A stretch of 63,335 nt of DNA, the filler included, from Lenisia limosa (taxonomy: Eukaryota; Protista; Breviatea): the NCBI GenBank assembly GCA_001655205.1. It is 11 parts of 11 records of this genome, joined end to end, with 100 filler letters (N's around TTAATTAATTAA, not from the genome) between each part and the next. Parts side by side here need not be neighbours in the genome. Positions count along the whole stretch, not along the records: positions 23,330 to 45,837 come from LPNZ01002850.1; 10 more parts are not named here. One strand, given 5' to 3'. How positions within the stretch are numbered: the first letter of the stretch is position 1; each line of letters opens with the position of its first letter. Shown in pieces: positions 23,557-45,330 of the stretch. The notes beneath the pieces were generated by a model that did not search any database, was not told where the DNA came from, and was given only the letters and a program-made list of their open reading frames with translations. The translations under genes and the position numbers were made by a program.

Positions 23557-26500
23557 ATGTGCGCCTCCGGTTCGGAGCTGAGGGCCATTGGTCAGTTGGA
23601 CTTCCTGATTGAGGGACTTTCATCGGACAACTCGGTTGCTGTTCGAGGCCAGAGCTTCTTGTCCCTCGCAAATGAAGCTGTGAGGACGGCTTCTCATATC
23701 CTTTTTTGTCATCCTTTTCTTATTCCTAGTCCGTCACAACTACCATGATGATGATGAGAGTTGAAGGAATGGTTCCAAGATGTATAACTCCAATGATTGA
23801 CNNNNNNNNNNNNNNNNNNNNNNNNNNNNNNNNNNNNNNNNNNNNNNNNNNNNNNNNNNNNNNNNNNNNNNNNNNNNNNNNNNNNNNNNNNNNNNNNNNN
23901 NNNNNNNNNNNTCAGCAGCAGCTTGTTTGTTCAATGTTCTTGCTCGAGATTCGGCCAACCACGAACTGTTCACCTCATCTTGCTATGCCTCGATTCGCCC
24001 ACTCATGGCGTAAGCAAACACGAGCTTAATTTATACAGTTAAAACTCGGGATATTGGTTTTTGTGACAGTACGACTCGCCATCATATGATATGATATATC
24101 ATATGTCAGAGGAAAAACAGGTGTCTTCCTTGAATAGCTTTCTCATACAAACGAGGAAATAAATGACATTTCCAGTGGCCGCCTTGTTGATGTCTCGCTT
24201 GATTCATTGGTGCCCACGCCAGGGTTTGGTGACGTGTCGTGTGACGCAATTCGCCACGCCTCAGGCGCATTTGCTGTCGATATTGTGGCTGCGGAGTGTA
24301 TCCCTACTCCTCCTGTGGTAAGTTGCTATTTCATCATTTGTTATCTTTGGACTCCCCCAACAGAGACAATTCGAAAAGTCTCTTTAATGGTCCTAGAGAG
24401 ATGCAGTAGCTGCTGTTTTGGGACACAAAGATGGAGATTTGGACATTATTGTAGGCTGTTATTGTAGATTTTATGGAGTTACATTGTTCTTATGAATTCA
24501 GCTTGAGTCTTGTGTATTTAAAACAATATTTAACATAATATCTTACAAAATAGTGCTCAGGCCCAATTTTGATGTATGACGCCCTTTGCGGACTTTGCTA
24601 CGCATATGCTGACGCTCGGGACATGATCAGAGAAGAAGGAATTCTTGCCTCGGTTCGTTGTGAAGTTGCTAAACACTCTTACCGTCTAGTCCTGTGAGCA
24701 AGTCAAATATGGGGCCACAATGGTGAGAGAATTGGAAGAAGCCTGCTCTGACCACAGAAGAGAAAAGGTAAGGGTTCCTCCGTATTGAGAATTTCTTTTC
24801 TTACCCCTAAGATCAAATCTAACCTGCCGGTTCGTTGGCAATGGCAAGGCATTCGTATGGTTGCCGCCCTCAGCCTCTTAGAGTCCGCCATCATTAAACA
24901 ATCACGAAACAAAGTCAGGCTCAACTCCTATGGGGTTATTGAATCTAGATAATTGATGTATTCGTTTCTTATACCACGTATTATGGTACAACCATATAAA
25001 AGCTGGCATTTAATTCATATTACTTTTTTGCTCTAAATGTCACGATTTGTTCCCAATTTCTAACGGTTTAGGCTGCCTTGATTTCATTTCAGTTCGACAT
25101 AGCAGTAACAATGATATCTGTGATTAGCAGGACTTCATGTTTGTGGAGTGGAAAGTTCTTTTTTTTTTGAAGAAATACACTGTTTTCTTTCTGATTCTTT
25201 CAGCCATTCTCTCGTCTACGACCCCTCGTTCCCCTCCCGCAATCCTTTGTAAGGTCGAATCTGTATGTTACAAATTCACTCTCTTTAGGCCTTGAACTTC
25301 TCACTGCATCTCTTCGCCTTCTTGTCAACCTCACAAATCATTTCCCAGAATCATCCAAGTATGTTGGGTAAAGATTGGCTAATAACATTTATACCGTGAT
25401 TGAGGACAGCTTTGGACCTCTTTCTATTTCTACATGTATAATTACAAGTTCTTAGATTTGTGACCATTTCAGGTCCATTTCTTCTGCCAGTGGTGCTAAT
25501 GGCTGTCAAACTGTTATTTCTGTAAGCTAAGTCAATGTTTAACTATCCAGTCAATTGTGAACCTGACCGTTTTGCCTTTGGAGTGTCTTGGAGACCATGC
25601 ATTTGATTTGGTGCGTTTCTCATTTGGAGCTTTCTTTACTTCTAGGTCTTGCCTGCCCTGGTGCTTTTGGTGAATCTTCTTGAGGACAATGACGAGTTTC
25701 GTGAAGGCTTTTCTTCAGCGTGTACGAAGGGCTTCTCTTTGTCTCGAAAATAAACTAGGATCCGTCCCATATCCCATAATGATATTATCCATGCCTTTGC
25801 TGTTTACTTCTAATTCCTTCAGCAGTTTTAATTGAAGGAAAGACTATTTCGTGCATTGAAGCAATTATTCAGTAAGCTTGAGTTTCTCGATTTTACAGAT
25901 TAGATTCTTTGAAAGCAAACCTCTGATTCGTTCATCTTCGGAGCGAACCAAAGAGGAGGCTCAGGTTTGCACCTCTCTTGTCCCTAATTGCGCTGAATGT
26001 TATTCTTCTCTGATATTTTTACACTGGTCATTGATTTATTATATTTCATTTCTCTATTGTTTGATCATTACGTCATGTTTTGCCACTCTCTTCTCACACT
26101 TCAAGGCTGATACGGAAGCAAACATCATTGCCAGTTATGCTGCTCTCTTAATCGGATGTATTGTCAGAAATCATTCAAAGAACCGCTCCAAAACGCTCAG
26201 TACGAATCACATTCTCCCTTCTCAATTTCGTAGTGCTTCTCCCCACACATAGTTTCGATAGCTTGGCATCTCTGTTAGTTGAGTTTATTGCTTATCAAGA
26301 GCAAGTCGAGGTTGGCATTGTGAATATAGCAAGGCTTCTGAAGTTTTTTCTTTTCTTTTACCACCAGGTACTGACTGATGAATCCCGTCATGGTTGTGCT
26401 AAAATCGCGGAGGAGTTGGCAGATGCTTCGCCGAACTCAGAAGAAGAAATTGGTCGGTTTACTGAATCTCACGTGAATCAAATGGATGATTGACCAAGGC

Positions 26501-26984: not shown

Positions 26985-29900
26985 CTATTCCATATCCTCC
27001 AAAGGTCTGGTGACAAACATGCTGCCAGCTTCACTGCAAGAAATGGAGCCCACCGCTCTGTCCAATGTCGTAATGTGCTGTGGAGTAGGAACACTAAATG
27101 GTAAGTTGTCAGTTCTCCCTCGTCTTACAAGTCTGCCTCTCCAATCGCAAGTTGACCCTCGGAAGCAGATCCTAAAATATCAATTCCTTCCCGATGCTAT
27201 AACAGTGCTAGTGCTTTTCAATTATTCTATTAGTGGACATGGGAGTACGGCCCACCCCATGCGTAGACTTCGCCAAGAGCAGTGACCGTCATAGAATGCC
27301 AATGGCCGCACGCAATGGCCTCGATAACAGGCAGTCCTGAGGGGTGAGGGGGACAAAAAGCCGCAGGTATGAGCAGTGTAGTATAATACAAAAATCTTGC
27401 GTAGCTTGACCAGTTTTGAAAGCAACCATATGGAGGATTCAGCAGATTGAAATGCGATTTGAGAGGTATCTTACCAAAAAGAAACAAGCTCATTGAACAT
27501 ACCTTGTATCTTCTGTGGTTCAGCCTTATTTTCGGTGGTTCCAATTCCCAGCTGGCCCTTATTTCCGCGCCCCCAGGTGTACACGTCACCTAGTTGTGAG
27601 CCAAATGTCCGGAATACAACACCTCTCAGGGGTTGCTTCAATTTCAAAAGTAATAATTGAAGCTTCATACTCTGTTCATACTACTAGCTTAGGATATAAT
27701 ATAGAGCCAACCATTCTCTGTCAGTGCCATGCCGTGGAAGGCGCCGCATTCGACAGCAACCACTCGTTCCCTATGGTGTCAGGTGACGCAATCATTATAT
27801 TGTTCAGTCTTTGACATTCTTCACCATCAACATATCATATGTAATATACGATTATAATATGTGAAAGATGCTCAGTAGATAAAACTCACGGGACAGGGAT
27901 CTGCTTGGGCTCAGTTGAAGACTCGCCATCAACATCAAGACCCATATGCCACACTCGGCCTAAAGTTAAATAAATCCGAGCTTCTCTTGGGTTCCACCAA
28001 TAATATATCGGTCTCATTAGGAACAAATAGAAGCCAATATTAAATCTATGGGCGTTGTCTTACATACTATCTCTCAAACCTTCGCTATCAAGAACAAGAG
28101 TGTGGCAGTACCCCGCAGTGACTTGGACCAGCCGAACTCCTTGGTCCCTCAGGAAGGCAATTGGCCTGGTGGTGAGATCATCAAGTCAATGAAAACAGAA
28201 TCGGAGACCAAAACTCAAAGTACCTGAGACTAGCCTGGGCCGTGTCCTTGTCTTCAGCGTCTCCAAGTTGTCCAAACTCACCCCATCCCGCAACATGACA
28301 CACTCCAGAAGAGTCCAGAAGAGCAGTGTGGAATTGGCCGCAAGCGACGCTGATGGCGTTTCGTCCGTGGAACACAAGCTACGTTTTGAGTGACTTTTGG
28401 CAACCAACTTTTGGCGAGGTTTGGATCTGGGCAAGCGTTCCCATGCCGAGCTGTCCTGACTGGCCGTCTCCCCACGCGAAGACATCGCCATCCTCAGTCA
28501 ATGCCAAAGTGTGGTCCTATTGTTAATATGTTAAATCAATAAAGGACCAACTGCTCCAGCTGCCACGTGCACAACGTTCACACCGTCTAATGCCACAACC
28601 CGTGTGGGGAGGTGTAAATCTGTCTGAGTACCATGACCTAAAGGAAGGCGTCAGTAGAGCAAGTAAGTCAATGCTTTATTATTAACCCAGTAGAGCGTCA
28701 CTGCTTTATTATTAACCCAGTAGAGCAAGTAAGTCAATGCTTTAATATTAACCCAGTAGAGCAAGTAAGTCAATGCTTTATTATTAACCCAGTTGAGCAG
28801 GTAACCTAAGGCATATTATTAACTCCTCGTAATTCTTCAAATATTCCACCACCACCCCACCCAAAGCGCCGGTCTCGCCACGCCCGCAAGTGAAGACTTC
28901 TCCTTTCGTTGTGAGGAAGCACGTGTGATGCCAGCCGCACGCGACCTAGTGTTAAAAGGAGAAATGTGGTGCCTACTTGCAGGATATCCTGGGTTTGTAG
29001 GCTGTCTACCGCTTTTGGTAAAATGACGTGCTTGTTGCCAAATGGGCCCAATCCTAATGGTCAGTCTTTACACAGATTGCAGTTTTCCATAATAGTACCA
29101 TAATCATTCTGTCCATCATGTTGCCAAAAAAAGAAACAGGCCACATACCTAAACGGCCACCCGACATTCCAAACGAAAAAACGGTTCCACGAACATCAGA
29201 GAGGAGGGTATGGTCTGCTCCGGCCTCAATTCGGCAAATATCATGGCTCAAATTGTGCTAAACAGTTAAGACCACGAGCACATACCGCTACTGGGGTGAA
29301 GGTCGAGAACGACGTCTTGGTAGCGCCGCATTGCCCGCTTGTGGAGTTGCCTTAGGAGTCACTACTATTCCAAGGTCTTACCAGCAGCAAGGACTTGACC
29401 GTTTGTCAGAAGAACCACAGTGTGACTATTTCCAAGCGACACGGCAGCCACTGTTTCCTCAAGCATCACCATCTGAGTGGTAACCAAAGGTCTGAAGATC
29501 CAAAAAGCAAATATTTTTTTAAAACGATCTTCAGCATACACTTGGAACAGATACGAGTTCAGATTCGGTTTCTAAGCCCAAACGGCCGTTTGCGGAGGCA
29601 CCCCTTACGGAGTTAGAACGATATCGCGGATTTTCATATGGGATATGTAAGTAAAAATGAGTGAAAATGACTCAAGGCTTGATCTGACGTTAAGTAGAGC
29701 TCACCAGATGTAAAGCTTCCCATGATTGGTGAGGGCAGCACTGTGAAGAGACCCAGCTGAAAGTGACAATAAAAAGACTTCTCACCATGAACCGAAATAA
29801 CAGAGTCCGGAGCAAGGTTGGCAGGGGCAAGAGGGGTGATTTCAGCCTAGGTACGTGACAAAGAAAGCTGGACCATACAGGAGTTCGGATGATCTCAGGT

Positions 29901-32900
29901 CCAGCGCCGCATTGTTTGGCATGGTTCGCTCCCCAGGCAAAGACACGGCCTATGTTGGTTAATATAGGAATTCAAAGGTAATTGGTGAAGTTGGTAATAC
30001 TTTCTTCTGTTAAAACATGTCTTCTTTTGTCACAAATCCAGAAGGAACTTACCATCTTGAGTACAGCAAAGGGTGTGATTGGCTCCAGCTGATAACGATG
30101 AAACCTCCATCAAGCTGCTGACCTGTGCTGTTAACTTTTGAACTTAAAAGGCCAATAAATCTAATAATAATCAAAATAACTTAAATTTAACTAGATCTAG
30201 GTCTGCAGCCCCTTGTTGGAACTCACTCTGATAGCGTCATCTGAGGAAGGGCCTCCGACTCCTATTTAGTTAAACAATTATTGAGACTTTCTTCCGAGAC
30301 AAGGTATCCAGAAACAATGGGGAAACAAACCAAGTTGCCCCTTGTCGTTGCTGCCCCAGGTCCAAACGGTGTCGTCTGAGGCCAGACAGGCTACATGAGA
30401 CCACCCTGCCACGACCTTGACGTGAGGCGGAGGAATATGAAATAAAAAACCCAATCCAGGGATTGATGCAAAACAAGCCTTAAACAAGCAATTCTAATCA
30501 TGAAAGGCCACCTACAGATCTAGCAGCTGAGTGCAATCCCTTGATCTTGACAGGCTCCTCATTCATTGAATCGTGAAGACGGCCCCATTGAAGAACATCC
30601 GTATTCTGAACAATCAAAAGCGCTTTAACGTTCGTGATGAAACTACTACCCAGCAGTGAAGTCTCTGAAATTTGCCTTAACCTCCCACTTCCAGAAGAAC
30701 AACAGAAGCCTGACGAGCAGCAGCGGCCTGGACCACCACATTATCTGTAACATATCAAAAAGAAGACGGCTAATCAAATACTTCAGCATACATGCTCTAT
30801 TCTATGATTGTATGATTATATATAGAATACATAATATGATATCTTTAATATAATACTATCTGTAATCAAGAAGGGGTTGCATCAAGTAGAACTATCAACA
30901 TCATAATCACGTTGAAAGCATGTTGAGAGTGCATTATCACCCATTCTCTTTCTCACAATTCGGTGCCAACAGCACCCTTTTACAGGTTTGATAGAGTCAA
31001 ACACTCACCTCCCAAAGAAGACACACGAAGGGGACGGGTTAAATCCCTACGTCCACCAGAAGCATATAATGCTCCCTCAGCTGAAAAGTAAGCTGTCAGT
31101 ATGTTGAATGTGAGAACAAACCGGTGACAAAGAGGGAGTGAACAACACCTGCAGACATTTGCACGACTGTTTTGTCCCTGGGCAGTGAGCCAAATTATCA
31201 GGCTCTTCCTTTGAAATATTGGCATAAGTTTTTTCCTCAACAGAAAATTCACGAATTTGAGTGAAAAACTTGCCCCACCTTCCCAGCTGTGTTCCTGGAT
31301 CCCCTAGAAGTACAGTTGTTTTCCTACATGAATTCTTCAACCAAGGTCGGCTGGGTTCTGTTTAAAGTGTCTCCGAGGCCGAGCCCACCATGTGTGTTTT
31401 CACCACAAACCACAACAGCACCAGATACTAAGATATCAACACTGTTTGGAGTGGAAAGAGATACCCATTTCGGAAACGGTTCGAAAAGAGATCCGAATGG
31501 CTTACAGGGTCTGAGGGCTGAATAATCGCATCCATGTGTGAGATCCATAGTATTAACCATAACTCCATCGTCACGAAGGAAGGTTGCCTGATCACTATGG
31601 GGTAACAAAATAAGCTCAAAATCAGGGAAAATATATCATATCATATGTATACAAAGCCTCTTACGCTGCAGTTCTGATTTCGCCATCAACTATGAACACG
31701 TACTCATACACTCCTAAACAGTCAACGACAATACGTCATACCAGGGGTGAGGTAGACAATGGCAGAAAACGCCTGGCCATTGCGCATCAAACGCTCCTGC
31801 TGCTTCACATCATCCTGAAAGTAAGCCAAGCTCCAATGTAGCCTACAACACACGATGGATCCAGTCCTTCCTCGGGGACAAACGTGACTGACACGTTCCT
31901 GGCCCCACCCGAATGCCACGAGAGAGCTAAGAGTTAGTTGATATGATGTATAACCCAGGGTCAATAATATTCACTGGCATACTGACAGATACTTGGGAAG
32001 CTGGAGTGGTGGGTGTGACTACATCGGCTGGGGGAGGCTTATCTTCAGTTTTCAGTTCAGCAAGAGCAGCAGAGATCTAAGATTAATACATCAGAAAAGC
32101 TATTCAGATGAAGTTTTGAAAATTAGTTTCTTTGTTGAAGCCATAGCTCCATTCAATGGAAAAAGACAACAATCCAAGCCTCTAAACCCAAAAAAAGATA
32201 TCACAAACCTCATCTTTATCTGGTTCAACTTCGTTAATTTCTTCGCCGCCAAACTGGACTTTCTTGCGTGACTAAACCATGAGTGAAAAGGCATAGAAGT
32301 TGGGGATATGAGTTTCCCACCTTCGCCCCTTCTTCTGAATTCTTCTTCTCATTTGTTTCATCGGATGTATCAAACACTGCTGCCAGGTTTTTGGTTTTGG
32401 CTTTTCCACCTTTCTTGCGACGCTGAGTCTTTCTGTTAGACGAAGATTTCGACAGTTTCTGTATCATTGAACCTGAGAAGTCAGTCTTGTAAAACTCATT
32501 AGTCCAACTTTCAAGAGAAACTAATATTTCACCGTATCATGAAGGTGGCAAATGGTCAACGGCCCTCCCCCTCCTCAGCCCAACCAACTTATTCTGTCGA
32601 CTTCTTCATGGGGGAACTCGTGGTCCAGATTGTCCTCGCGAGAAGGCCACGCCGGGACATCCAGGCCTAAAGAGTGAACAGCCACTCGGAAACATACCTT
32701 GTTTGATCGCAGCCTGCGCGACATCATGGATCCAGAATACCACCTATATCATCAACATGAACAGTAACTTTGCATTATTCACGCTACATTATATTTTCTG
32801 GTTAATATTGAATTTTATATCCTTCATATCACATTGATTCCCAAAAGCTAACTTGTGGTGAGATGTCACCAAACTCTGACCCATATCTAGAAGGTAAATT

Positions 32901-33584: not shown

Positions 33585-34116
33585 TGTGGACCTAAATGCG
33601 TTGCGTGATTCCCAAAAAGAAAAAATGCGAATGGCCGCCTGAATTGAACAAAAGCAACCCCAACCTTCAGGGGTGTTGTCTTCAAAACGATTTAATAGTT
33701 GATGAGTAGTTACGAGGAGAATTGAGGATTTGAGTTCGAGCAAAAGGAAACAGGGGCAACAAGTGTTGAGTTGATAGGGGGGGGGGGGCTNNNNNNNNNN
33801 NNNNNNNNNNNNNNNNNNNNNNNNNNNNNNNNNNNNNNNNNNNNNNNNNNNNNNNNNNNNNNNNNNNNNNNNNNNNNNNNNNNNNNNNNNNNNCCTCGCC
33901 AGAATAACAGAACAGCACTGGAACCTGACTGCAACTTGACTGCAACCTGACTAGAAAAACAGGAAGTAAAGGATACGTCCGCGCCTTTTCCTTTTCCCCA
34001 AAAAAATAAAAAACGAAAAAACACAATAAACAACAGTTCCCCACTGAAGAACTGATTGACCAGTATATATACATACAGACGCAAAAAGGTGCCTTCATTG
34101 TTTCGGAGTAGTAATC

Positions 34117-40870: not shown

Positions 40871-42235
40871 TTACTCCTTGACTATGTCGGCAGCAATCTC
40901 GCCTGCCCAGTTCTCAACCTAGAAAAGTCAACGCTGAGTTGAATATGTGTAAACGACTCGATGTTATTAGTACCTTTACGCCATTCTTCATCGAAATTTC
41001 CTTCATCCCCCCCCCCCCNNNNNNNNNNNNNNNNNNNNNNNNNNNNNNNNNNNNNNNNNNNNNNNNNNNNNNNNNNNNNNNNNNNNNNNNNNNNNNNNNN
41101 NNNNNNNNNNNNNNNNNNNNNNNNNNNNNNNNNNNNNNNNGCAATTAGTCAGTTACCATTTAGCTACAATAATTTGGAGCAAATTGGATCTTTACCACTG
41201 TGGCCTACTTCTGAAAGCTCTGAACTTCATCAAGAACTTGGTGGGAGTGGGGTACCTAAAAGAGATCATTTGTGGACAATTGGTACCGATGAGGTACTTA
41301 GGATAACTTAGTTCTTAAGGTTACAAATGAGAATAGTAAAATAAATACACTTGCGCCACTTATGCTGTGTTATAAATATAAAGCCAACGAAACATATTCC
41401 CCTCCATCCCCAATACTTAGTGTACGCAATGTGTCCAGCAAACGACCTTTGGTAATCAGGAACACGGCTCTTTTGGGTGAAAAAGAAGGTAAAATGTGCT
41501 CATAAAGAACTGTTAACCAGATCATGATGTCTCCCCCCCGATTTCTCTGCTCACATCCGGAGTTAGACGAGGGATTTGAGCGAGGTATTCGGCCTCCTTG
41601 ACCAGACTTTCCTTGTGGAGGCCTGCAGCAGCTCCGGAGACAGAGAAAAATCCAAATTTGGAGTCCTTGGGTGTCAGGCAGATGTTATTAAAACTTCCTT
41701 CAAAATATAAATAATAACCACAACCTCATACAGATAAATCAACAGTTTTCAGAAATTTCTCAATTTCAGGGCCATGAGTGTCGTGGTAAATTGGGGCGCC
41801 GATAATAACAGCCTTTTGTGTTAGCAAATAAGAGGTTTATCCGGATACTTTTGAATTTAGATTTAGCTGGAATATTAATCATCATCCAATACAGGCCTGA
41901 GGCAAACAAGAGAAAGGTTGGGGAAAGGAGTCTATATGATTGCTATAATGATACGAATCAAAAGGAATCATGTTTGTTCGACAAAATAGCTTGCTTGAGT
42001 ACCCCACGGAGCCTCCCCTGCTAACATCAAATTCCGAAGTATCAAGTTTAGGTTTGGAAGGCTCCAGGGCGTCAGAAACGTTCATAATTGGGCCAGCTAC
42101 CACATTTTTTGCCTTGAGGGATGCGCCAATGGTTTCAGCAATTTTTTTGGTGAGTCCAAAGCGAGAATTATAGAAGATAGCGACCTAAGAAGGGATAAAC
42201 CAAACCAAATTTGAACCAAATACCTTTGAAGCCAT
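40871..42235 (-). CDS. HemG-like long-chain flavodoxin (Flavodoxin_5 type), at least 7 spliceosomal introns
   Basis: Spliced product: MASK|VAIFYNSRFGLTKKIAETIG...EFD|AVIIGAPIYHDTHGPEIEKFL...|DSKFGFFSVS...TPD|...FAGHIAYTK|YPTPTKFLMK...EEWRK|VENWAGEIA. All HemG/Flavodoxin_5 blocks occur in order. The junction after TPD is uncertain and one stretch is N-masked. Confidence 0.82.
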
Positions 42236-42453
42236 TGTGTGCTCTAACAACTTGTGGGTGTGTGTGGTTTATTCTTTCTGGTTGGTTTGCAAGGACAACA
42301 ATAAAAAGACCACAACCACAGCAAACATCGGTGATAATATCGAAATATTTCGGTGAATTACTGGTTTGAGAAAAAACAGGCTACCAGGAGTCTTGCTAGA
42401 CAGACAGACAGACAAAGCGTTGACTCAGCTGATATCACTCCCCATTAGACAAA

Positions 42454-45330
42454 ATGGGCTGTAAGCCCAGCAAAAAAGGCGAGTCTAGTACTCCAATGAT
42501 TGAGGAACCTGATATAGCGCAGAGTCACATCCCACAGCTTCACTCTTATGATCATCAGAAGCGTTATATAATGGATCCGGGTACTGGGTCGATTATTTCT
42601 CCAATGCGTGAAACAAGTAAGCCCTTTTCTCAATCCTTCTCTGTTCTCCTCTTCTTTGACAAATTAGGTGACGGTGAATCTGAAATATCAATGGATAGCG
42701 TCTCAGACTCAGACTACGAAGAGTAAGTCGGGGATGTCTTCATCTTTTTTAATGTTCATATGAATTCTATTATTTCAGCAGTGGGATTAGTATTAAAAAG
42801 CAATGTTTCCATTAATGTTCTTATTCTGCTTGCAGGGACACATACAAGGTTATTATGACAACATCACCGGATACTGGTGATGAGACGGAGTATCTGGTTC
42901 TTAGAGAGATTGGAAGAGGCTCTTTTGCGAGGGTACGATTGGGCAGTGATATTTTCCAACCTGTTTTAAAGGAGAATCATATGTGACTTGCGGTTTCATA
43001 TGGTCAGAAGAGTAGCACAAAGTATCAATATTAATCTTGATTATTGTTTACAGAAGAAATTCAGTCTTTGTTTTTGAGACTTGTTTGTGATACCGCAGGT
43101 GAAGCTCTGTGTAAATGTTCAAACACGCGAAGAATTAGCTGTGAAAGTTTGTTTTTTAATGGTAGGAGTTATCCTCTAGATTTATCCACATCACTCTTTG
43201 CGAAAGCGGTCTTTTCATCAGGTAGGAATTGGTGTTCTTTCTGGAGTTTACTTTCGCTAGGGCTCTTCCTTCGAAGATGTGCGCAGAGAAATAGCCATAC
43301 TTCGTAAAATGAACCACCCCAATGTGGTTCGTCTTCACCAAGTGGTGGATTCGCCCGACACTTCAAAACTCTATCTCTTTTTTGAGTATCTTGCTGGTGA
43401 GCAAGCTGCCACTTGATCACTTGACTATCTAGGCGGCGCCATCTTGACAGGCCAACCAATACAGGATCCTCTTCCTCTTGACCGTGTGAGAATGTAAGAT
43501 TTCAAGTTAAAATTCACGATTCAGCTACATGAGGGATCTTCTCCAAGGAGTTCACTACTTGCATATCAACAACATTGTCCACAGGTTGTGCTCCTCTGAC
43601 TTTTCGGCTCATATCTCTAGGGATATTAAGCCGGAGAACCTCCTTCTCAGTGCTGAAGGAATCTTGAAAATTACAGATTTTGGAGTAAGTCATATTTTAC
43701 TCCATGATGACGACCCTCTACCCAATTGCGCAGGTAATATTATTTACTGTGTTTATTGAGTTTATTGAATAGGAACCCCTGCATTCCTTGCCCCCGAGAT
43801 TTGTTTTCCAGAAGAAGACAATGTTCCAATACAAGGTAAAGTTGACTTTTTCTTTACTCCCAAGGCAAAGCAATTGATATGTGGGCGGTTGGAATCACGA
43901 TGTACTTCTTCATCTTTGGACGGGCTCCTTTCAATGCTGGTTNNNNNNNNNNNNNNNNNNNNNNNNNNNNNNNNNNNNNNNNNNNNNNNNNNNNNNNNNN
44001 NNNNNNNNNNNNNNNNNNNNNNNNNNNNNNNNNNNNNNNNNNNNNNNNNNNNNNNNNNNNNNNNNNNNNNNNNNNNNNNNNNNNNNNNNNNNNNNNNNNN
44101 NNNNNNNNNNNNNNNNNNGCAAAGAGAATAAACATTTGTAGTTCTTAATGCCAACAGATTCGATACATGACGTCCTATCTCAAATTGTTGAAGATCAAGT
44201 GTACATACCGGAAGATATGAAGGTAATCAATTTATGTCACCTTTACACTTTAGCTGCCTGACGGAATGGAAGAGTTCTTACTGAAACTACTCTGTAAAGA
44301 TTCTACTCAGAGACTTACTATTGAAGAAGCGCTGGTTTGGGATGGTTGAAATGAAGCTGATTTTCTGTAGATAGACCCTTGGATCACAGCTAATGGGGAA
44401 GAACCAATAACAGAACTGACAAAAGCATTTTCTCGTATTGAGATTAGGGAAGACGATATTTTGGCCTCGCTTTCCCATAATCCTTCACTTTCGGTAATAC
44501 ACCGTGACCACAAAAGCTTACCTGCAATTGAGTTCACTTTCACAACACCAGGTTTGCTTCTGGGATCTTTAATTTTTGTTCGAATTTCTCTACTAGTATC
44601 TGATTTACAAAATATATCATATTGCTATTTATTTTTATTCTGGCCATAACCAATCGAAGTTGCCACATCAAGGCAACTTACATATGAGCCAAATTCGCAA
44701 TCTACGCAAGCGCTTGTTGGGCCGCAAACAAGAATGGGGCTTTTTGAAGGTTTGGATGGTATTGCTGTTTTTTTGACTTGCAGGCAACATTCTTGATAGC
44801 TACCTTGCTTCCAAAGCAAGCTTGAACGATGAGCTTGGCTCTCCGAAATCTTCTAAAAACTGGATGAGTCATTCCGGAAGTAGTACGAGGGTTTTTTTTT
44901 TTGACTATTCTCATCATGTAACTCTCATTATTCAGGCTTGGAGAGCTTCACCTCAGAACGTTCACAAGCAAGTTCGGTTCAACAGGCAATGAATAGACGG
45001 TTTGCCAGCATAGAAAAAACAACGCCAACCAAGGCTGCACGAATGGTAAGACTGGTTGGGAGAAATTGTACTTGTGTGAGTTTAATTCTTGCTACTCTAA
45101 TTCAATAATTAATGAGTTCGTTATCGCTCAGCGAATGACGTCGTTCAATGCCATTACGGAACAAGATGAAGCTTGCCATGAATATTCGGAAAATAAGAGA
45201 CGACCAATACTTCATATCGAGGTAAGGGAATGAATGGACTTATTGTATTGTTTGACTTTGTAACCATTTAGACTTTCATTTCAGCATCGGAAACATCAAG
45301 TGATCGTTTTCATGGTTTGCTGAATTTACT
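42454..45330 (+). CDS. CaMKK/GRIK-like Ser/Thr kinase with an N-terminal MGC acylation motif
   Basis: MGCKPSKK start; [64 protein letters not shown]|[17 protein letters not shown]|[24 protein letters not shown] and DPWIT. The 3' end is approximate. Confidence 0.88.

Follow-up and report, generated by a model that had tools for sequence, protein, structure and literature searches.

A transcribed, seven-intron HemG-like flavodoxin gene, apparently of prokaryotic origin, in the breviate Lenisia limosa

HemY is the enzyme with which eukaryotes are so far known to oxidise protoporphyrinogen; Leishmania and its relatives, which carry a HemG of gammaproteobacterial type, are the only exception on record. 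A locus in the breviate Lenisia limosa, a free-living anaerobic protist (assembly GCA_001655205.1), raises the question of whether another eukaryote has taken in a gene of this kind, and, if so, from where and for what chemistry. The locus lies on the minus strand at 40871-42235 of the window, by which we mean the whole stretch of 63,335 nucleotides that was analysed, within a piece derived from record LPNZ01002850.1 (positions 23,330 to 45,837). A first-pass annotation, made from the sequence alone, had read it as a prokaryote-type HemG-like flavodoxin gene with at least seven spliceosomal introns, the outcome of an old horizontal transfer. The explanation that we favour, and hold to be highly probable as a whole, is that of a domesticated, transcribed gene of eight exons and prokaryotic origin, whose product is a HemG-like member of the Flavodoxin_5 family and a flavin mononucleotide (FMN) redox protein.

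By blastn and base-by-base comparison, seven blocks in the window agree at every base (100% identity) with a 666-nt transcript contig in ENA (L001) that contains no introns and whose open reading frame (ORF), beginning at base 54, encodes the 187-residue protein P0001, held in EukProt (record EP01086) as a Trinity transcript of Lenisia limosa. Since the blocks match base for base, L001 serves as complementary DNA (cDNA) for the locus, and its comparison with the window defines eight exons and seven introns in a reading frame that runs from 42235 to 40871 (Table 1). All seven introns are spliceosomal and missing from L001; introns 1-5 are each bounded by GT and AG, intron 6 opens with GT (41208) and intron 7 closes with AG (40919). 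The GC content is 0.45 in the exons and 0.33-0.42 in the introns. The locus is a real nuclear gene, transcribed and correctly spliced, as the assembled transcript demonstrates. The cDNA also confirms most of the model that had been drawn from the sequence alone: the ATG at 42235, the first intron of 39 nt (42185-42223), the stop codon ending at 40871 and a spliced ORF of about 190 residues were all placed correctly, and the intron count of at least seven becomes exactly seven.

One exon is hidden from view in the assembly. Bases 517-569 of L001 (53 nt) have no counterpart in the window, where 0 of their 44 10-mers were found, and the whole of exon 7 must therefore lie in the run of N's at 41019-41140, both flanks of which agree with the cDNA in order and orientation. 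With exon 7 entirely inside this gap, no reading frame can be traced across it. The hidden exon completes N155 and encodes H156-D172, NHGPTDTTRDHVMTDWDD, a segment that holds 7 of the 19 residues invariant in the family, such that the gap conceals a coding exon with the family's most diagnostic motif. The peptide motifs quoted in the first-pass annotation were all correct, but the tryptophan that it placed before VENWAGEI is encoded in this hidden exon, and the EEWRK stretch beyond the gap is intronic.

The sequence bordering the gap calls for some caution. A post-gap stretch, DEGNFDEEWRK (41007-40975, minus strand), was considered as an exon and rejected: the cDNA lacks it, its phase does not fit exon 8, and it would require a non-canonical intron or a 1-nt error. 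It is therefore intron, and its likeness to the TDW..V motif of the family is apparently a chance resemblance that could mislead gene prediction. A run of 12 G's (41018-41007, minus strand) abuts the gap and may be an artefact of sequencing or assembly where a contig ends, and the bases adjoining the gap deserve less trust. A further candidate exon, within the 213-nt intron 2, was likewise rejected, the cDNA containing none.

Table 1. Features of the Lenisia limosa flavodoxin gene in window coordinates.
Feature	Position	Strand	Content and evidence
5' untranslated region (UTR), to first base of L001	42236..42288	-	L001 bases 1-53 identical to window
Exon 1, coding part	42224..42235	-	M1-K4, ATG at 42235; identical to cDNA
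Intron 1	42185..42223	-	39 nt, GT..AG, phase 0; absent from cDNA
Exon 2	42026..42184	-	V5-D57; strand beta-1, FMN phosphate loop S11-T16, helix 1, strand beta-2; Flavodoxin_5 match; identical to P0001 5-57 and to cDNA
Intron 2	41813..42025	-	213 nt, GT..AG, phase 0; cDNA comparison
Exon 3	41732..41812	-	A58-S84 (AVIIGAPIY...); Flavodoxin_5 46-68; identical to cDNA
Intron 3	41666..41731	-	66 nt, GT..AG, phase 0; cDNA comparison
Exon 4	41555..41665	-	D85-D121 (FFSVSG motif); identical to cDNA
Intron 4	41470..41554	-	85 nt, GT..AG, phase 0; cDNA comparison
Exon 5	41417..41469	-	S122-T138 and two bases of K139; HemG-type insert loop begins (G133, Y137; E. coli HemG alignment); identical to cDNA
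Intron 5	41256..41416	-	161 nt, GT..AG, phase 2; cDNA comparison
Exon 6	41209..41255	-	Last base of K139, Y140-R154, first base of N155; Y140, K145 and predicted cap helix 142-154 (AlphaFold2 model); identical to cDNA
Intron 6, readable start	41141..41208	-	68 nt, begins GT, phase 1; cDNA comparison
Assembly gap	41019..41140	.	Rest of intron 6, whole exon 7, start of intron 7; cDNA comparison
Intron 7, readable end	40919..41018	-	100 nt, ends AG, phase 0; holds the 12-G run and DEGNFDEEWRK; absent from cDNA
Exon 8, coding part	40871..40918	-	V173-E187 and stop; C-terminal helix VENWAGEIAADIVKE; identical to cDNA
3' UTR, to last base of L001	40822..40870	-	cDNA comparison

To which family does the encoded protein belong? 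Full-length analyses were run on the public record P0001, and the exons of the window were searched singly, never joined. P0001 matches the Pfam profile Flavodoxin_5 (PF12724) at 81.3 bits, against a gathering cut-off of 27 bits, over profile positions 2-144 of 145, which makes it a member of that family; taken singly, exon 2 (profile positions 2-40, 21.7 bits) and exon 3 (positions 46-68, 19.6 bits) stay below the cut-off and are collinear. Against NCBIfam, exon 2 gave weak matches to flavodoxin and HemG models, while the full-length protein was matched end to end by a single model, the HemG/PgdH1 equivalog NF008316 (profile positions 2-173 of 177). Against PDB, exon 2 gave weak flavodoxin matches, and the matches to ribosomal protein eL13 were set aside as chance.

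The relation to Escherichia coli HemG (PgdH1) extends over the whole protein, with 29% identity over 180 residues to the K-12 protein (BLASTP; HemG from NC_000913). Both belong to Flavodoxin_5 and to one length class (187 residues in Lenisia versus 181), and they share the [ST]xxGxT FMN loop, a Y-x-x-Y pair with a basic residue five positions on, and the motifs G-x-TDT and TDW..V..(F/W)A.EIA. The long insert loop of HemG (E. coli residues 124-149), which has been defined and found to be required for activity in earlier work (PMC4114063, PMC4231631), is present at equal length in the Lenisia protein, and the catalytic insert region aligns without a gap (P0001 131-181 with E. coli 122-172). Mutagenesis of Leishmania major HemG has found Y137 to be essential and Y134 important, with R142A lowering activity 50-fold (PMC4114063). 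L. major Y134, Y137 and R142 correspond to Lenisia Y137, Y140 and K145, as read from the alignment with E. coli HemG and from the spacing Y-x-x-Y-(x4)-R. Unlike E. coli HemG, the Lenisia protein thus has lysine rather than arginine at the substrate-binding position, and its gene is eukaryotic and nuclear, with seven introns.

In an alignment of 27 sequences, the Lenisia protein keeps the residue at 19 of 19 invariant columns, among them F91, V93 and S94 of exon 4. The FMN loop S11-R-F-G14-L-T16 is intact, with G14 invariant and T16 present in at least 90% of the aligned sequences. Retention of every residue invariant in the clade, despite the long branch described below, suggests purifying selection.

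Where are the relatives of this protein found? A word-based search with P0001 across 5.8 billion proteins, including EukProt, returned 28 proteins, namely P0001 itself and 27 relatives with 31-36% identity from metagenomes or metagenome-assembled genomes, one of them named Gemmatimonadaceae and many labelled by JGI as menaquinone-dependent protoporphyrinogen oxidase. None of the 27 carries a eukaryotic source label, an absence bounded by what the databases contain and by what a word-based search can detect. An exhaustive phmmer search with exon 2 among 1.84 billion representatives gave two matches: P0001, identical over 53 of 53 residues (100%), and a protein of 1881 residues (P0002) that was rejected as a relative, its eight match sites lying in a low-complexity repeat (SSDKFGLKKD...) rather than in a flavodoxin; this search found no other true relative. 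P0002 itself comes from a 1.3-Mb ENA contig and contains many tandem copies of a repeat of about 40 residues (SSDKFGLKKDNAEKDIG).

A scan of GTDB species genomes added 230 loci, mostly in Gemmatimonadota, with others in Natrialbaceae, Haloferax, Pirellulaceae, Acidobacteriota, Beta- and Gammaproteobacteria, Myxococcota, Chloroflexota, Flavobacteriaceae and Armatimonadota. Overall these relatives are 27-36% identical to the Lenisia protein; haloarchaeal members from Natrarchaeobius (L003), Natronobiforma (L035) and Haloferax (L050) reach 33-36%. Look-alike clusters in the Atlas were archaeal or bacterial, and all three inspected contig contexts of relatives (3/3) were bacterial. The clade, which the NCBI model leaves unnamed and JGI calls HemG, is marked throughout by the motifs FFSVSG, AYTKY and GPTDT[TS]RDHxxTDW. 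The Lenisia protein shares with it every alignment-invariant residue, including the hidden-exon motif G-P-T-D-T-[TS]-R-D-H-x-x-T-D-W, and differs in its AT-richer gene, its introns and K145, a position at which at least 90% of the prokaryotic members have arginine; the bacterial homologues are rich in arginine and alanine, compared with an exon GC of 0.45 in Lenisia. A word search with E. coli HemG itself returned Enterobacteriaceae only and no Leishmania sequence among the matches listed (at least 120).

Two trees, a quick one of 112 rows and a careful one of 65 rows under LG+C20 with posterior mean site frequencies (PMSF), neither of which included Leishmania HemG, place the Lenisia protein among these relatives rather than with classical HemG. 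In the careful tree a branch with 100/100 support has four enterobacterial HemG proteins on one side and the other 61 sequences, Lenisia among them, on the other, and the quick tree also separates enterobacterial HemG from everything else. On both profile score and tree topology the Lenisia protein is placed outside the characterised HemG group, and the membership of that group implied by the first-pass annotation falls. Its comparison with Leishmania holds in part. The gene for L. major HemG (LMJF_06_1280) and its counterparts among Leishmaniinae and Strigomonadinae are eukaryotic nuclear genes of the HemG family that came from bacteria by lateral transfer, as the Lenisia gene apparently did. 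The Leishmania enzyme, however, has been proven to be an oxidase, shares about 50% identity with the E. coli protein and clusters with Gammaproteobacteria (PMC4114063, PMC4870792); the Lenisia protein reaches 29% identity to that E. coli protein and falls with another, uncharacterised clade. Because the one is gammaproteobacterial and the other belongs to a different clade, the Lenisia acquisition would have been separate from that of Leishmania.

An AlphaFold2 model of P0001, built with 27 sequences (mean predicted local distance difference test score 87.5, predicted template modelling score 0.82), has the strand and helix alternation of flavodoxins together with an extra insert helix at 142-154. 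In a Foldseek search of PDB, the best matches were all flavodoxin-fold proteins, headed by the haem-binding FldH of Fusobacterium nucleatum (FldH/HmuF, 8g64; template modelling (TM) scores 0.62/0.67, 18% identity), with WrbA-type quinone reductases and the flavodoxin domains of flavodiiron proteins also among the strong matches. In FldH, a helical cap holds the tetrapyrrole against FMN (PMC10404700). The Lenisia model resembles FldH in having a flavodoxin core with a helical cap but, at 18% identity and a TM score of 0.62, with a different cap sequence, so that the likeness seen is one of fold. A profile search of PDB found no solved HemG structure and returned N-terminal flavodoxin matches only; a 2026 review states that no proposal exists for how HemG binds protoporphyrinogen or performs its reaction (PMC13564367). 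The modelled flavodoxin fold with its FMN-binding loop points to FMN as the probable cofactor.

How, then, did the gene reach Lenisia? Its ancestor was apparently gained from a prokaryote by lateral transfer, judging from a distribution of one eukaryote against hundreds of prokaryotes, and this part of the earlier proposal stands. An approximately unbiased (AU) test did not reject a tree that unites the 60 prokaryotic rows and leaves Lenisia outside them (p = 0.46), and the Lenisia branch is very long, at 2.75 changes per site versus a median of 0.55 (about five times), with weak grouping beside the long branches of Pirellulaceae, Haliangiales and Fimbriimonas (87/55). With Lenisia free, on this tree, to lie outside the prokaryotic clade, the direction of transfer is argued from distribution alone, and the long branch together with the AU result singles out no donor. 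Vertical inheritance from a eukaryotic ancestor, with loss nearly everywhere else and no transfer, would fit this AU result, the very long branch and the richness in introns; we nevertheless regard it as very improbable, given that neither the 5.8 billion proteins with EukProt nor the exhaustive exon-2 search yielded a further eukaryotic relative, that all Atlas look-alikes are prokaryotic and that very many independent losses would be demanded. Still less credible is bacterial contamination, a chimeric assembly or a decaying, functionless relic, to which the four N gaps of the contig, one of them inside the flavodoxin gene, and the poly-G run might be taken to point: the seven spliceosomal introns are exactly removed in an independent transcript assembly, the genes on both sides are eukaryotic, the GC content is host-like, and the ORF is intact with all family-invariant residues kept. 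The gene lies between eukaryotic genes (a protein-kinase gene and an RCC1-repeat gene, described below) and is therefore not contamination, as had been argued from the start; its physical linkage to host genes supports a genuine host gene. It is a fully domesticated gene of prokaryotic type. That the transfer was old, as first proposed, is plausible from the long branch, the seven introns and the host-like GC content, features that do not allow it to be dated.

As to function, we picture a domesticated FMN redox protein of prokaryotic type, whose gene would have taken on the GC content of the host and gained seven GT-AG introns after transfer. The protein looks cytosolic and would adopt a flavodoxin fold, with FMN held by the S11-x-x-G14-x-T16 loop and the HemG-type insert (about 133-170) folding as a helical cap over the flavin that carries Y137, Y140, K145 and the G-P-T-D-T...T-D-W motif. 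It may be an FMN dehydrogenase or reductase that works without oxygen on a bulky, planar substrate and hands electrons to quinone or another acceptor, with protoporphyrinogen IX oxidation, as in HemG, as the leading single candidate reaction. This activity is plausible on sequence grounds, yet we lean against it. A true quinone-dependent, oxygen-independent protoporphyrinogen IX dehydrogenase (HemG/PgdH1) might complete haem synthesis in Lenisia under anoxia, using porphyrinogens of its own or derived from prey, with the acquired late pathway of Leishmania as the parallel; we consider this possible but doubtful. Speaking for it are the end-to-end alignment with E. coli HemG and the equal-length catalytic loop, the retained tyrosine pair (one of them matching the essential Y137 of L. 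major) and TDT...TDW motif (PMC4114063), the full-length match to NF008316 and to no other NCBIfam model, and the JGI label of the bacterial relatives. Lenisia has also retained complex II, which depends on haem b, along with enzymes that use quinones (bioRxiv 10.64898/2026.01.29.702055), and the haem auxotroph Porphyromonas gingivalis is reported to retain only a few enzymes of the haem pathway, HemN, HemG and HemH among them (PMC13096392).

Several observations weigh on the other side. P0001 scores 66.7 bits against NF008316, where the curated cut-off is 142 bits and E. coli HemG scores 333, and nine bacterial relatives (105-131 bits) also fall below the cut-off, in keeping with the 100/100 branch between the clade and characterised HemG. 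Where L. major HemG has an arginine relevant to substrate binding, the Lenisia protein has lysine. Strand 1 of the AlphaFold2 model starts at residue 4, leaving no N-terminal extension; a cytosolic location is therefore the default expectation, and this puts access to the organelle's quinone pool in doubt. A scan of the genes beside 80 bacterial homologues found no enrichment of haem-pathway genes, and no haem gene lay near the homologues in the three inspected contig contexts. The clade also extends to Chloroflexota and to haloarchaea. Haloarchaea make haem by the sirohaem route, and since they carry members, the function of the clade may not be protoporphyrinogen oxidation. In the literature, Kobayashi et al. 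argue that HemG homologues outside Gammaproteobacteria are probably not protoporphyrinogen oxidases, and the Bdellovibrio homologue failed to complement a hemG mutant (PMC4231631); the 2026 review regards HemG as restricted to enterics (PMC13564367). That the protein is HemG-like but has another role, whether in tetrapyrrole handling or reduction as in FldH/HmuF, as a general FMN quinone or xenobiotic reductase, or as a low-potential electron carrier of anaerobic metabolism, stands in our estimate just short of an even chance. Such a role would agree with haem-binding FldH as the best solved fold match (PMC10404700) and the strong matches to WrbA-type reductases and flavodiiron flavodoxin domains, with the varied and often stress-related neighbours (Usp, BON, HSP20) in bacteria, and with the presence of the clade in organisms thought not to need a protoporphyrinogen oxidase (PMC4231631). 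Against it, FldH is only distantly similar in sequence (18% identity), with the match confined to the N-terminal part (E = 5.5e-4), the insert loop is specifically HemG-like and not FldH-like or WrbA-like, and no partner gene is known. CgoN (YtpQ, gene ytpQ), an oxygen-independent coproporphyrinogen III oxidase, was also considered, and no link to the HemG-like family was seen. The breviate literature surveyed mentions neither haem metabolism nor flavodoxin.

Whatever the reaction, a breviate gene of the HemG family with seven introns is a further case of prokaryotic redox genes in anaerobic protists, and it draws attention to a large, biochemically uncharacterised HemG-like clade. Should the Lenisia protein prove to be a protoporphyrinogen dehydrogenase, it would be the second case in which a eukaryote had independently captured HemG-type chemistry, here from a source other than Gammaproteobacteria, and the HemG-like clade of Gemmatimonadota and haloarchaea would consist of genuine porphyrinogen dehydrogenases, taking the range of the enzyme well beyond enterics. 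An active clade would thus bear on how anaerobic eukaryotes obtain haem without O2 and on how narrowly HemG is distributed; an inactive one would leave one more lateral transfer of a flavoprotein, ordinary for such organisms.

The neighbours of the gene are eukaryotic, and the GC content is uniform (0.34-0.48) across the piece. On one side lie protein-kinase exon fragments on the plus strand (43279-43756), belonging to a gene that starts at a plus-strand ATG at 42454 and whose product begins MGCKPSKK, a possible N-myristoylation site. About 165 nt (42289-42453) separate this divergent ATG from the 5' end of the flavodoxin cDNA (42288), an interval that looks like a compact shared promoter region. 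The other flank holds a multi-exon RCC1-repeat gene (PF00415, PF13540) on the minus strand at 27233-31608. The same piece contains three further N gaps, at 23802-23911, 33791-33893 and 43943-44118, the last of which interrupts the kinase gene and may conceal coding sequence.

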